Positions 13,067-19,064 of a stretch of 64,000 nt of DNA are shown here, piece after piece. Position numbers and translations under genes: made by a program. Within the stretch, counting starts at the first letter, position 1; every line of letters starts with the position of its first letter. The stretch spans positions 1,188,406 through 1,252,405 of the forward strand of contig RHPI01002262.1 of the NCBI GenBank assembly GCA_009103225.1, read 5' to 3'. The DNA is from Chlorokybus atmophyticus. Its lineage: Eukaryota; Plantae; Mesostigma and Chlorokybus algae. The notes beneath the pieces are model-generated. The model had not been told where the DNA came from. It was given only the letters and a program-made list of their open reading frames with translations, and ran no database searches.

Positions 13067-14855
13067 ATGCAGGCAGCGGCTGAGGTGAGCAGTTGTAACG
13101 CAGCATGCGTGTCACCACCGGGTAGTGCTGCATGCGTGTGTGCATGCTCAAGCATGTATGTCTGACGTTGCACATGCTTGCTGCTTTGTCACAACACCGT
13201 GTCAGCGCACAGTCCTGCAGTAAGTTGTTGAGAGTTGTAAAATAGGTGGCAGCATGCTACTAGTGTTGCAGCACTGCAAGCTTGCAAGTAAACCATTCCT
13301 GTGTTTTGATTTAAACAAAATTTGTAAGACGGTCACAAACACAATGGAGACAGTGTCAGTGAGCCTTGCATTCAGTTTGGCACAAGCCAGAGAGACGTTT
13401 CCATGCATACAGACGCCGAGCTGCATGCCCTCGCACTGGCAACTGGCTGTTGTTGAGCCAGCCAGTAGCCATAGCTTGAGTGGAAGGCAGTAGCAAGACT
13501 GCAGCCAAGGCTTTGTTGCTGCTTAAGCTGGCGGAAGGCAGTAGTAGCTGATGTTGGCTGGTTAGAAGCATACCGCAGGTGGCCCAACTGCATGTACGCC
13601 TCACCATACCGTGTGATGAGGCGTACAGTAGTGCTGCTGGTTGTGATTGACAGTTTAGCTGCGTCAGCTGTGTGGCAGCTCATACATGCTACCATACATG
13701 AAGCAAGTACCTAGCTTAGCCAGCCAACTTTAGTTGGTCAAGCATGTGGCCAGCAAGTGGCAGTTGGGAGGGCTTAATTGCAGCGTGACAACAAAGACTG
13801 GTATAGACTAAGCAACTCATCAAGTTCAGCAAGTTGGGATTGCACATGCTTGCGAAAATGGCCATGCTGCGCCGCAGTATGGCCAGTTTTGACAAGCATT
13901 GCTGCCAGCAAGTCAGTACCTGGCTCAGACGCTTGACGCAAATAGGAACATCACACTTTTCGAACATATTGCGTGTGAGAAACGGTAGCATGTGCGCAGT
14001 GGCGACAGATTCGGCCTATGCACACAAGTGCAGCACTAAAGCACCAACACTGCTGACTGAGTGCTTGTGAGGGAGCAAGACACGCAGTGTGTGACTTGCA
14101 TGACTGGTCATAGTTGTATGCTTATGCTCCTTTGACATAGGCATCACGGCTGAGGATGCGAAACCTGCCCTTGACTGGGAGGCAGTCCCGTGTGGCTGCG
14201 TCTTCGCACAGTCCCGCTGCCCCATTACCGCAGCCTCGGCGCGAGACACGCATGCAAGCGCAGGTACAGGCTTTCAGCTTGGTTATGCTGTAGCGGCAAA
14301 GATCAATCGCCTACAGATCAGCCATGCTTCTGAGCACATGCATACGTGTGAAGGCATCGAGAGTATTGCAATGACACTTGTACAAGCCAACACAATACTT
14401 GACTTTCGCTCAAGTTTATGAGCGCAGGCACAAGTAGCGCATGGACATGCTTCAGACCAAGGCAGTAATGATGCCGACATTGCAGCTTTGCACACCCAAC
14501 AGGCCACCCTTGCAAGTGACATCCATCAGCTACATAATCTGGTAAGGGCAGAAGCAACACCAAGACTCTCATGCTGTACATAATGATTGGTGTCACACAG
14601 ATTGACACGCTTGTTGAGCGTGTGGCCGCTCTTCATGCGCAAAGCCAAGACGCAATATGCCTCTGGCGGCAGCAGCAGGACAGTGTGGCCAAATTGGAAA
14701 GCATCAGTCAAGAAAGAGAGGCTGCTGTTGCGAGAGTGAACCTATTGGAGCAGAGTTTGAACTGTGTGCGCCGCGCACAGAGGCAGTCGCTCATTCTCAA
14801 TGCTGTGGCTTGGACAATTGCCATCGTACTCGCTTTCATGCTCAGACTGTTGTAG
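13067..14855 (+). CDS. Probable tail-anchored coiled-coil protein; internal exons and start uncertain
   Basis: Donor GTGAGC follows ...MQAAAE. Exon-like segments lie at ~14140-14265 and ~14430-14541. The last exon (IDTLVERVAALHAQSQ...ILNAVAWTIAIVLAFMLRLL*) is a coiled coil followed by a C-terminal hydrophobic helix. Confidence 0.45.
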
Positions 14856-14998
14856 AACAAACCCACCTACAACTTGACTACTAACACCAACTGCCCCTCT
14901 CTGTGCTGACTTCTCGTCCACTGCAATAGACTCACTACTGGACTACACAAAACACACTGTTGTATGCACACGCGCACATATCACACATGCGGCGCATA

Positions 14999-16961
14999 TC
15001 ACAGGCGTCTCAATATACGGCGGCGGCGTTCAGCTTGTGCAGCGTGCAGGCTTCCCCACTTGCTAATGGCGGTGACTTCAACATCGCATTTGCGGTACAG
15101 ACGCATGGGCGCCCACCCCTGGTTGAGAGGGTTCAAGTCCACCTGAGAGACGTCACGCGCAAGGCAAGTAAAAGTAAAGTAAAACTTGCGCGGTGACTGA
15201 ATGACTAAATAACACTGAGAGCGTACCGCATAAGGCAAGTTGCTGAAGCAGGAGTGTGTCAGACAGTACTCTGATGCAGCATCTGCTTTTGTAATCTGCA
15301 AATCATTTGCCAAAATGTCAATGGCACATAAATGTGCTAAAAGTCACACATACGCGCACACATATGCTCGCAGCCCCCTGCATTGCATGCAGGTGCATGC
15401 AGGATAAGTGCCAAGCACCAACACGCAAAGACACATGCGCAGGTGACTGCAATTGCCATGCATGCATGCATGTCTGACAGGGGGCAGTAGTGGTAGACTT
15501 GGAGGTAGTTAGCAGGCAGCATGTAGGCGCCTTGTCTCGATGGTCGATGTGGTGAGTGTTGGTGGTGTTGGCTGAATTGCATGTGCACGTAGGTTTGCAT
15601 GTTATGCATTGCCTCTTGTATCTTTTGTGCACACATATGCACACACGCACACTCAGGTACCTGCAATTTTGAATGCACGCATGCGTGCGTGCGTACGTGC
15701 ATGCAGGCTCACGCACACGCAAGCATGCATGCGCACACATCAGTCTGACTCTGTGGTGCAACCACCACACGCACCAGCCGTTGTTGCCGTGTGGAAGCCG
15801 CATGCGACTCCGAGCACCCGAGACACAGTCGCACCTGAAGTCAAGGAGAGCTTAGCTGTTGCACTTACTTTGCTGTCAACGCACAATAAAACCACAAAAA
15901 TGATGATAATGTTCTCGTCTCCTAATCCACTCACCCTGAGAGTGCCAACAGTCAGCGTGCGCGCGCACATCTGGCCGCACTCGAAGCAGCTGGAGGCAAA
16001 GTGCCGCGCATAGCAGTTTCGCCAGCTGTCAGCTCCGCCGACACCATCATCGGCAGCAGCCTCTAAACTCCAGCCGCGCGCTTGACACCGCCCCTTCCAG
16101 AAGTGCTCCGCGTCGCTCACAAGCGAGCGCAAGCCTTGACACGTCTGAAAAAAAAGGTGTGCGCATGCGCGGGTGCGTGTGCGTGCGCCTGTCTGTGCGT
16201 GCATGCGCACATGCATGCATGCGCGTGCACACACGTTGCTGTATATGCACGCACGCACGTGTGCGTGCGTGTCCACAGACACGTGTGTGTGTGTGTGCGC
16301 GCGCGTGCGCGCGTATATGTGCGGACGGGCGCTACGCGTATGCGTGGCTGTGTGCCTTGTCATGACAAACGTTGTGACTAGCTTTGTCAATGAAGCTCAC
16401 AGCTGCAAGCGAGTATGTGAATCGAACGGAAGTCATGCGTGCCAGCTTTTTCACATAAGACAGGCAGGATGGTTCCCTTCAGTGCATACGAGTAAGTAAA
16501 CGTGAGCAGCATGTGGTCCAAGTTGCAGTTGATTGAGATGATGCTATAGATTGAATATGATTATTGTAATTCATGTGGATTATTGTGGACCTGTTGCTGT
16601 ATGTGCTAGTTGTATAGTGAGATATGGACCCTTTGTGCACTTTTTGGAGATATATTAGAGTTCATAGGATCATGTGGTCCTACGCCATCACTTCCAGCGT
16701 CCGGATGCGAATCAGCAAAACAACAAACGTTGCAGGCTCGCGGCAAACTATGAAGTACTAACCGATACAAGCGGCAATCACCCAACATAAACCACACACC
16801 TGCGCCAAGTTGCACAGATCCTGGTCGCTCAGTCCCGCCAGCAGCTCCTCCCACACCTCCGCCGGCACGGCCAGCAGCCCCGTTGACGCCTGCTCCTCCT
16901 TCCTCTCCTTGTCCTCCACCTCCACCTGGTCCTGCTCCGCCCTCCGCCTCCTCTTAGCCAT
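14999..16961 (-). CDS. F-box protein fused to an XPA-like C4 zinc finger and XPA C-terminal-like DNA-binding domain, ~214 aa
   Basis: Model join(16961-16800,16144-15935,15834-15775,15295-15227,15142-14999), all phase-0 GT-AG. F-box: LLAVPAEVWEELLAGLSDQDLCNLAQTCQGLR. Zinc finger: CFEC-x14-CLGC. XPA-like: LITKADAASEYCL...NPLNQGWAPMRLYRKCDVEVTAISKWGS. Confidence 0.8.
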
Positions 16962-17032
16962 ACTCAGCCAACTGGTGCTGAAACAAAAAGAAATGATCCG
17001 CACCGTGTGCTTTCTTGCAGAGAACTCTCAAC

Positions 17033-19064
17033 ATGGCTGCGGCGGCGGCGGTGGCGACGGCGGCGAGGCCCTGCTCGTCTCACTCGACCACCTCGTCGTT
17101 GTCACGGGTGTCGTTGCCATGCGCCGTGCGAGCCAGAAGAAGACAAGGGACTCCGCCTCTGCTGCTGCCGCATCCTGCAGGTAATGCATGCATGCATAAA
17201 AAACTGTTGTACACTGTTGTACAGCGCGAAAGTTCTGTAGAAAATCAGATGTAAATCGTACTTGTGGATCGCGTCATTGTTAAGCTGACACTTCTACCAT
17301 GGAGATCACAAGCACATTGCCAGTGGCACGCAGGTGAGCACAATGGGTGTCCATGACGCACAGCAGCTGCTAACCTCCTTGCCGTGGCTGTTTATGGCAG
17401 TTCTATCCTATGTGTACTGTAATCTGAGTGCTTTCAAACAGTCTGTTGTACACAGAGTCATGTGCACACGTACCCGAACACGCACAATCCGGTTCGAGAG
17501 AGTATGCCTCTTTGTTTGCGTCAACTTCTGTCCACCCAATGAGAGCCCATCCTCAACCGCACCAATCTACTCTTGCCTGATACATCTGTCAAATTGCAAC
17601 CTCAGGTCACATCAGGCCTTCATCAACCTGCAAGCTACGAGTCGTGGCGCTGCAGACGACCGCGCAGGACTCCAACAACGACACCAATGGCGACAGCAAG
17701 GACAGCTGGGGACCCCCCGCTGGATGCAGCCGCTTCTCAGTCACACTAAAAAGGCCCCTCGGTGAGCAAAGAGGGTCAAAGATTGAAGCATGCTACCTGA
17801 TATGTACAGGCATTTGGGTGCAAGTGTACGTGTGTGCGTGCTTGTGTGGGTGCACATGTGCATGAGGGTGTGTATAATGTGAGGATAAAGGGAGCGAAAC
17901 ATGTCAGCAGATGCGTGCACGCGTGTTTGGGTTTTGTGCGTGTGCACGCATACGTCCTATGCGCGCGCAAGTGTGTGTGCGTACTTATGACATCCGGACG
18001 TCTGTCTACATACCTTGTATACGGCTTATTATTCTTTGTTGTTAAAAACGTATGTGATGGATGTATCCATGCAGGGTTGATTTTGGAGGAGGACAAGGCT
18101 GGCAACATCTTCGTGGGGGAGGTGCAGAAGGGCGGGAACGCGGAGGCCGAGGGGAGCGTCACTGTTGGGGACCAGCTCATTGCCACTTCAGCTGGTACAC
18201 AAGACAAATCAGTCGTGTTGGACGAATGCACCGCGCACACAATCTTTGTACACGCGCGCGTATTCCCAGGCACATGCTCGAGCGTGCGCACGTGCACGCA
18301 CACGCACACGCGCACACGCATGTGCATGCGCAAACATGTACATCTGCACCCGTGCGCGTAGCTATGACGGTGTGTGTGTGTTTGTGCGCAACCATATGTG
18401 TAAGCAAGGCTGTTGAGTGATGTGTTCCATCCCCTAATGTTTAACACGAGCATGTGACATACTCGTGCTGCGCGGCAGTTGTATACACGAAGGCGCAGCG
18501 GTACGGCGAAGTCAACGTGCGAGGGGGTGAGCAGGTTGTGAGGCTCAACGTGCGCGGAGAGGTAGGCACTGTTGTACTTGGTTACTATGATTTACTTGTT
18601 ACTCTGTCATCCAGTTGAGGGTATGGCCAACATGACCCAACAACAAGTTGCAATGCAGGATTTCAAGACTGTCATGGCCGCCATTGGCACGCATCCCGGC
18701 CATATGGAGGTGCGTATTGTCAAGGGTGTACATGCACAGTATAGTGTGTACTTGCACGTCATGCACACAATCATGTCACAGTTTTGCATATTGTACAAAC
18801 ACACTTCCATCACAAAGACACTTTTGCATCTCATCGCAGGTAGCTTGTGCATACATGCGTGCTGCTTCAACTGACACACCATGCATAACCAACCTATGTT
18901 TGTACTGTCAAGCGATTGAACAGTCTTTCTGGATGTTTACATCAAGTTGTTTTGTTGTGACCACTTTTGTTGTGACCATGAGTTTCGTTGTGGCTGTTTT
19001 GCAGGTGAAACTAGAGTTTCAGAAGTGCGAACCAGGCCGAGGCCCCCTTGCCAATTCACGCTAA
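17033..19064 (+). CDS. Plastid-targeted PDZ-domain protein
   Basis: Exons 17033-17180, 17606-17761, 18075-~18194, ~18479-18561, ~18659-18709, ~19005-19064. Transit peptide. PDZ: KRPLGLILEEDKAGNIFVGEVQKGGNAEAEGSVTVGDQLIATS. Confidence 0.8.

Follow-up and report, generated by a model that had tools for sequence, protein, structure and literature searches.

A window of 64,000 nucleotides from the genome of the streptophyte alga Chlorokybus atmophyticus (assembly GCA_009103225.1, contig RHPI01002262.1, positions 1,188,406 to 1,252,405 of the forward strand; the window means this whole stretch, and positions are counted from its first letter) carries, on its minus strand at 16961..14999, a five-exon gene with a product of 214 amino acids (aa). 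This product is almost certainly an F-box protein that ends in a core of the type known from the repair proteins XPA (human) and Rad14 (yeast). The reading as an F-box followed by an XPA-type zinc finger and an XPA_C core is strongly supported: it is based on the sequence, on a predicted structure, on an architecture kept throughout a clade of relatives, and on one spliced transcript. Green-algal proteins of this kind are a conserved, uncharacterised family. We propose that the Chlorokybus protein is probably a nuclear substrate receptor of the SCF (SKP1-CUL1-RBX1) ubiquitin ligase, whose XPA-type core would aim the ligase at DNA structures. The preliminary description of this DNA had stated that land plants lack a canonical XPA, and the literature backs this for green plants as a whole (PMC10810185, PMC12707071). 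By what route the green lineage, which has no XPA, carries out nucleotide excision repair (NER) is recognised as an open question (PMC10810185; PMC12707071).

Whole-protein analyses were run on the stored public sequence P0001 (eukprot jgi/Chlat1/3318/Chrsp22S03473, Chlorokybus atmophyticus), with which the translation of the joined exons is identical, and the exons were also searched one by one. In Pfam, for which P0001 also carries precomputed labels in the public proteome, the protein matches XPA_C (PF05181) at residues 143-188 with 36.6 bits (cut-off 25; E 4.3e-9). Residues 31-75 match F-box-like (PF12937; 30.0 bits, cut-off 24.3, E 4.6e-7) as well as F-box (PF00646; 24.4 bits, cut-off 20.5), both above their gathering scores, and F-box-like is found again in 27 of the 38 aligned relatives. 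Among PDB sequences, Rad14 and XPA take the first nine places (E 3.7e-6 to 3.3e-5; best Rad14 3.7e-6, best XPA 4.4e-6), in an alignment that runs over residues 105 to 209 or so and includes both zinc knuckles. With a profile of the family the same comparison gives 9.6e-21 for Rad14 and 1.9e-20 for XPA, followed by Fbw7 (4e-10) and SLC30A9 (6.8e-9). Taken alone, exon 4 aligns with positions 5-21 of XPA_C and exon 5 with positions 34-51, which is co-linear. Exon 5 by itself also finds Rad14 and XPA among the PDB sequences, where exon 4 has no match; exons 1-3 searched singly give Pfam noise only, because intron 1 splits the F-box.

These results agree in most respects with what had first been read from the letters, namely a start that resembles a nuclear localisation signal, an F-box and a C-terminal core like that of XPA and Rad14. 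The N-terminal MAKRRRR, ITKADAASEYCL and NPLNQGWAPMRLY...KWGS are all present in the protein, which ends where the XPA-type core (residues 105-214) ends. One detail has to be corrected: the finger had been given as CxxC-14-CxxC, and it is in fact C107-x2-C110-x17-C128-x2-C131, the same CxxC-17-CxxC spacing as in XPA.

The predicted structure tells the same story. A single-sequence AlphaFold model was poor, with a predicted local distance difference test (pLDDT) of 42; AlphaFold2 given an alignment of 38 relatives reached a pLDDT of 91.4 and a predicted template-modelling score of 0.79. Comparison of this model with the XPA DNA-binding domain, which the preliminary description had recommended, puts Rad14 and XPA at the top of the structural matches: 15 of the first 16 Foldseek hits are Rad14/XPA DNA-binding-domain entries, SLC30A9 (PDB 2enk) holds rank 16, and Skp1-bound F-box proteins come after. 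Residues 28-106 superpose on the F-box and linker of the Skp1-bound proteins Cdc4, FBXO3 and FBXO31, and the model shows a three-helix F-box fold and then a linker that carries the C-terminal domain. The layout is that of a basic N-terminal cluster, an F-box with a helical linker (about residues 28-104), and a rigidly attached XPA/Rad14-type core, in which the C4 zinc finger is followed by the alpha/beta XPA_C subdomain.

Could the two halves have been brought together by a faulty gene model, with the F-box and the XPA-like exons in different transcripts, or with a spurious open reading frame (ORF)? Two points speak for such an artefact. The sequencing runs that provide transcript contigs are only guessed to be RNA, and the contigs reach no further than 16926 and 16863, which leaves the start codon, the 5' end and the first 32-35 nt of the coding sequence outside their coverage. 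Set against this, one spliced contig in each of two runs from two studies (760 nt in run X1, from 2013; 794 nt in run X2, from 2021 and a slightly different strain) joins all five exons. The junctions in these contigs are exactly the predicted ones (CT..AC as read on the plus strand, hence GT..AG on the strand of the gene), and their spliced state implies RNA. The separate transcripts that had been named as a way to refute the fusion are not what the contigs show, and the five-exon, 214-aa model first drawn up is the same as the minus-strand translation and P0001. The architecture is also repeated in about 40 cluster representatives, one of them a close homologue encoded by an intronless single ORF, and the structure model is of high confidence. 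The chance of an artefact is thus very small, and a chimeric gene model was rejected on the spliced contigs and the intronless homologue. The locus is a genuine, expressed Chlorokybus gene. Its ATG at 16961 is supported by the family alignment, in which basic N-termini of the same type (MPxRKRR...) recur. Between the related strains the coding sequence differs at four synonymous sites and one non-synonymous site (A34P).

To place the protein among its relatives, an exhaustive HMMER search was used, which gave 236 matches with E up to 1e-3, including 29 with E up to 1e-10; for scoring them, local profiles were made from the best matches. The F-box occurs together with an XPA-like core in the roughly 40 representatives mentioned above. 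Full-length F-box members have the core as their very last part, nearly always with 0-7 residues after it; the other matches have the core mid-protein with 50-190 further residues and are of the canonical XPA type. Among these canonical-type matches 70 of 71 reach XPA_C, and only three also have an F-box. In the core-domain tree the F-box proteins with a C-terminal core group together in one clade (31 rows, SH-aLRT 95), separate from canonical XPA, with the Chlorokybus protein as sister to all other members (support 94); the tree has 112 columns and is unrooted, and it speaks for a separate clade rather than for an origin from XPA or beside it. Some 30 clusters at 50% identity share both clade and architecture. 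The survey of green algae that had been suggested yields one conserved clade, with Coccomyxa elongata (CAL8464873.1) and Ostreobium quekettii (CAD7695895.1, 'F-box domain-containing protein') as named members and marine picoalgae among the others. Further members stem from MMETSP transcriptomes and from marine metagenome clusters of high abundance. Most are environmental or Logan sequences, and a JGI protein bears the label 'XPA protein C-terminus'. Whether queried with exon 2 or the whole protein, the word-index protein search returned P0001 alone, and a profile search of the word-index proteins found essentially one marine clade.

One relative touches on the gene structure itself. P0009, a protein of 188 aa from a Logan contig, has a very similar finger (ALNVGTLRIRLC) and departs from the family consensus right after LPYA|V, which is the exact position of intron 4 in the Chlorokybus gene. 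It looks like a read-through into an unspliced intron, in a gene that shares this intron position and is possibly the paralogue or the orthologue of a sister species.

The distribution of the family qualifies any functional reading in three ways. No land-plant name occurs among the 30 matches that were looked up, a negative that is suggestive only, as 9 of the 28 non-query matches at E up to 1e-10 fall outside this look-up; with no land-plant member seen, the bearing on the XPA puzzle of land plants is unproven. Arabidopsis SKIP31, considered as a possible plant counterpart, came up in the literature search in gene lists only, without a link to XPA, and was dropped as unsupported. The second qualification comes from three other proteins with an F-box and XPA_C (P0063, P0087 and P0100), which branch outside the green clade, carry a C-terminal extension of 150-200 aa and have no aromatic residue at the position of XPA's DNA wedge. 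The third is an Ascomycota 'putative F-box' cluster, which matches residues 100-214 of the model weakly (template-modelling score 0.34) and as a lead only. If this match is real, Rad14-bearing fungi carry such proteins, and the architecture is not simply a replacement for a lost XPA. The fusion of F-box and XPA_C may have arisen more than once, or may predate the green lineage. A further weak structural match to the model is a Nucleocytoviricota cluster.

What has been kept of XPA's DNA-binding surface? Residues were counted over 32 clade members and, depending on the column, 50-52 canonical-type sequences. The zinc cysteines C107, C110 and C131 are present in all clade members and C128 in 31 of them, and they are invariant or nearly so in the canonical group too; N171-P172, M180, L182 and Y183 are conserved as well. 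XPA W175 and Rad14 F262 act as the wedge at the junction of single strand and duplex (PMC7038936). Their position, W177 here, is aromatic in 32 of 32 members (F in 22, W in 9, Y in 1). The DNA backbone is contacted in XPA by K141, K151, K179, R207 and R211 (PMC9739396), which align with K147, T157, R181, R209 and R213. The wedge aromatic and the basic contacts are therefore retained with the exception of T157 in place of K151, a position at which 19 of the 32 clade members have arginine. The clade core is also strongly basic: its median net charge is +9 and its pI 9.7, compared with a median charge of +2 for canonical XPA cores.

In the mechanism that we propose, the F-box would dock on SKP1 within the SCF ligase, and the basic core, in the manner of Rad14 and XPA, would bind to DNA structures irrespective of their sequence. 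Candidate structures are single-strand/duplex junctions, bubbles and kinked duplexes, which would be held by the aromatic wedge W177 and the basic contacts K147, R181, R209 and R213. The ligase would thus be brought to proteins located at such sites; candidate substrates are factors of repair, replication or transcription that have stalled at a lesion. The protein would not be a scaffold of the XPA kind, because the parts that bind RPA32, ERCC1 and TFIIH are absent. For the separate parts of this proposal our expectations differ: that the core binds DNA is what we predict on balance, by a narrow lead over the opposite, and a role in the DNA-damage response we consider possible but less likely than not. 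The original suggestion, that an SCF adaptor with affinity for damaged or branched DNA could couple lesion recognition to ubiquitylation in a lineage without classic XPA, is plausible, and the conserved DNA-contact residues and the strongly basic domain speak for it.

A number of observations weigh against a DNA-directed receptor. The profile searches that had been recommended bore out the F-box and XPA_C and failed for XPA_N (PF01286), which has no Pfam match on the Chlorokybus protein even at E up to 10; only 13 of the 71 canonical-type matches reach XPA_N, which makes it a weak yardstick. Part of XPA's DNA-facing surface is remodelled in the clade. The position of XPA K141 is lysine in just 14 of 32 clade members, that of K167 has an acidic D or E in 27 of 32, where 45 of 52 canonical sequences have K or R, and that of H171 is V, I or L. 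The residues E106, E111, F112 and D114 of the XPA finger, which bind RPA70AB (PMC7038936), are not kept. Finally, SLC30A9 has a related XPA_C-like domain, and the fold can accordingly occur outside NER proteins.

The same observations could be explained by an SCF receptor whose XPA-like core binds a protein substrate, the fold having been re-used as a protein-binding module. Most F-box proteins bind protein substrates through their C-terminal domain. The surface is partly remodelled, with the charge reversal at K167, the loss of H171 and the clade-specific, near-invariant R143, R184 and D187, and the related domain of SLC30A9 lies outside DNA repair proteins. The XPA core, too, binds a protein in addition to DNA, RPA70AB (PMC7038936), yet the residues for this contact are not conserved in the clade. 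The wedge aromatic in every member, the retention of most backbone contacts and the very basic core are likewise at odds with a pure protein-binding module, and the family profile is much nearer to XPA/Rad14 (1e-20) than to SLC30A9 (7e-9). We regard it as rather unlikely and continue to favour a receptor that is directed to DNA structures.

The positions of the exons, introns and notable residues are collected in Table 1. Introns 1-4 are all in phase 0, with a GT donor and a pyrimidine-rich tract ahead of the AG acceptor. Intron 4 has no in-frame stop, which is why an ORF of 104 aa runs across exons 4-5.

Table 1. Features of the F-box/XPA-core gene of Chlorokybus atmophyticus, in positions of the window (minus strand; nt, nucleotides; UTR, untranslated region).
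Feature	Position (strand)	Content	Evidence
Exon 1	16800..16961 (-)	Residues 1-54: start codon, MAKRRRR, acidic helix, first two thirds of F-box	Translation, GT donor, Pfam, RNA contigs over 16800-16926
Exon 1, F-box start	16871	Residue 31	Pfam
Intron 1	16145..16799 (-)	655 nt, GT..AG, GCATGC/GTGCGT low complexity	Joint 16144/16800 in X1 and X2 contigs
Exon 2	15935..16144 (-)	Residues 55-124 (70 aa): F-box end (to 16082), helical linker, C107-F-E-C110 (15988-15977)	
Intron 2	15835..15934 (-)	100 nt, GT..AG	Joint in X1 and X2 contigs
Exon 3	15775..15834 (-)	Residues 125-144 (20 aa): C128-L-G-C131 (15825-15814), connecting segment to clade-invariant R143-L144	
Intron 3	15296..15774 (-)	479 nt, GT..AG, low complexity and short pieces common to other transcripts	Joint 15295/15775
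Exon 4	15227..15295 (-)	Residues 145-167 (23 aa): first half of XPA_C core (ITKADAASEYCL...), K147 aligned with XPA K141	
Intron 4	15143..15226 (-)	84 nt, GT..AG, no in-frame stop	Joint in X1 and X2 contigs
Exon 5	14999..15142 (-)	Residues 168-214 (47 aa) and stop: second half of XPA_C core	
Exon 5, features	15115-15113 (W177)	N171-P172, wedge aromatic W177, R181, KWGS, terminal basic helix ERRRRILRRL	
3' UTR	14786..14998 (-)		X1 contig piece 14786-15140, X2 piece 14814-15140

The gene has close neighbours on both sides. A plus-strand gene lies head to head with it, with a likely ATG at 17034 and an N-terminus (MAAAAAVATAARPCSS...) that resembles a transit peptide, which leaves just 72 bp (16962-17033) between the start codons of the two genes. 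Sites that resemble acceptors (tttcag / cttgcag) point both ways at this gap, which is outside the coverage of the RNA contigs. At the other end the 3' UTR extends to at least 14786 (X1) and overlaps, over 14786-14855, the last part of an ORF on the plus strand that converges with the gene (14571-14855); this ORF is coiled-coil-like and ends in a hydrophobic segment resembling a tail anchor. Introns 1 (16145-16799) and 3 (15296-15774) are full of low-complexity sequence of the GCATGC/GTGCGT type. Within intron 3, short contigs from runs X2 and X3 with unrelated loose ends match 15426-15466 and 15576-15628; these pieces therefore recur in other transcripts and resemble short repeats of the dispersed kind.

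How much of this was known before? Full-text literature searches found no functional study of the F-box/XPA-core family, and the possibility that the architecture is already well characterised, raised at the outset, comes down to a passing mention. Kose et al. (2023) noted an 'F-box clade' of remote XPA homologues and set it aside as an outgroup (PMC10810185). Its members have F-box or F-box-like matches together with XPA_N or XPA_C, lack the conserved cysteines and occur in species that also have XPA, and their function was not studied there (PMC10810185). The green-algal clade, in contrast, keeps its finger, with C128 in 31 of 32 and the other cysteines in 32 of 32 members. The clade of Kose et al. 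may correspond to the type of P0063, P0087 and P0100, or to the Ascomycota cluster.

Of what this analysis found in green algae, the F-box/XPA family comes closest to XPA. DNA-contact residues that are kept, with a ubiquitin ligase module in place of the scaffold arms of XPA, offer a concrete candidate for repair in green organisms without XPA. The proteins are small, some homologues are intronless, and members occur in culturable algae (Coccomyxa, Ostreobium, marine picoalgae). A more far-reaching and, in our view, improbable scenario is that the common ancestor of green algae and plants wired the XPA DNA-binding core to SCF, that XPA-less algae answer opened or kinked DNA with ubiquitylation of factors at the lesion instead of scaffolding, and that the family was later lost towards land plants. 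If this were true, eukaryotic excision repair, or the clearance of stalled complexes, would have a branch that had escaped notice so far. To our knowledge, an SCF receptor built on an XPA fold would be a new way to target ubiquitylation to DNA structures, and it matters even if the protein is not a repair factor.

Comparison with known systems begins with XPA and Rad14 themselves. The Chlorokybus protein shares with them the C4 finger in its exact spacing, the alpha/beta XPA_C core behind it, the wedge aromatic and four of the five backbone contacts of XPA. This raises the question of whether it is the working XPA of its lineage, responsible for damage verification and for the NER scaffold, with an F-box that serves its own turnover or is vestigial. 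Green algae and plants do perform excision repair without a canonical XPA (PMC10810185, PMC12707071), and the core DNA-binding domain is well conserved, but the regions around it differ. Residues 1-104 form a basic/acidic helix, an F-box and a linker where XPA has the N-terminus that binds RPA32C and ERCC1, and the family alignment has no conserved motif for either partner. Also absent is the C-terminal extension through which XPA binds TFIIH and which makes its DNA-binding helix longer; nearly all full-length clade members have 0-7 residues after the core, where canonical matches have 50-190. The RPA70AB interface is not conserved, the charge at the K167 position is reversed and H171 is lost. 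The F-box is conserved across the clade and is therefore not vestigial, and no land-plant member is found among the named matches. A working XPA is accordingly very improbable, and a functional XPA orthologue was rejected on the missing partner-binding regions: the protein has the DNA-binding core of XPA and does not qualify as a working scaffold.

A second relative of the core, SLC30A9 (ZnT9/GAC63; PDB 2enk), is much more weakly similar (profile E 6.8e-9, compared with about 1e-20 for XPA). It has no C4 finger aligned to that of the Chlorokybus protein and is fused to a cation-efflux transporter instead of an F-box. An SLC30A9-type protein was ruled out on the far weaker similarity to 2enk than to XPA and on the absence of a Cation_efflux match on the Chlorokybus protein in Pfam.

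On the side of the ligase, FBH1 (F-box DNA helicase 1) and KDM2A and KDM2B (FBXL11 and FBXL10) are F-box proteins with a DNA-binding module of their own, through which SCF is brought to DNA. The family profile picks up all three through the F-box. Their modules, a UvrD-type helicase in FBH1 and a CXXC CpG-binding finger in KDM2A/B, are unrelated to the XPA fold, and the proteins are much larger and multi-domain. In excision repair, sensors of lesions or stalled complexes serve as substrate receptors of cullin-RING ligases, as in CRL4-DDB2, CRL4-CSA and the yeast Rad7-Rad16-Elc1-Cul3 complex. These differ from the Chlorokybus protein in working with DDB1/CUL4 or Elc1/Cul3, in having WD40 or SWI/SNF ATPase sensors, and in showing no sequence relationship to it. 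A summary of DDB2 and CUL4 is available (PMC12707071). By analogy, these systems offer a precedent for bringing SCF to DNA and for coupling a lesion sensor to a ligase, the logic we suggest here, and not for doing so with an XPA fold.

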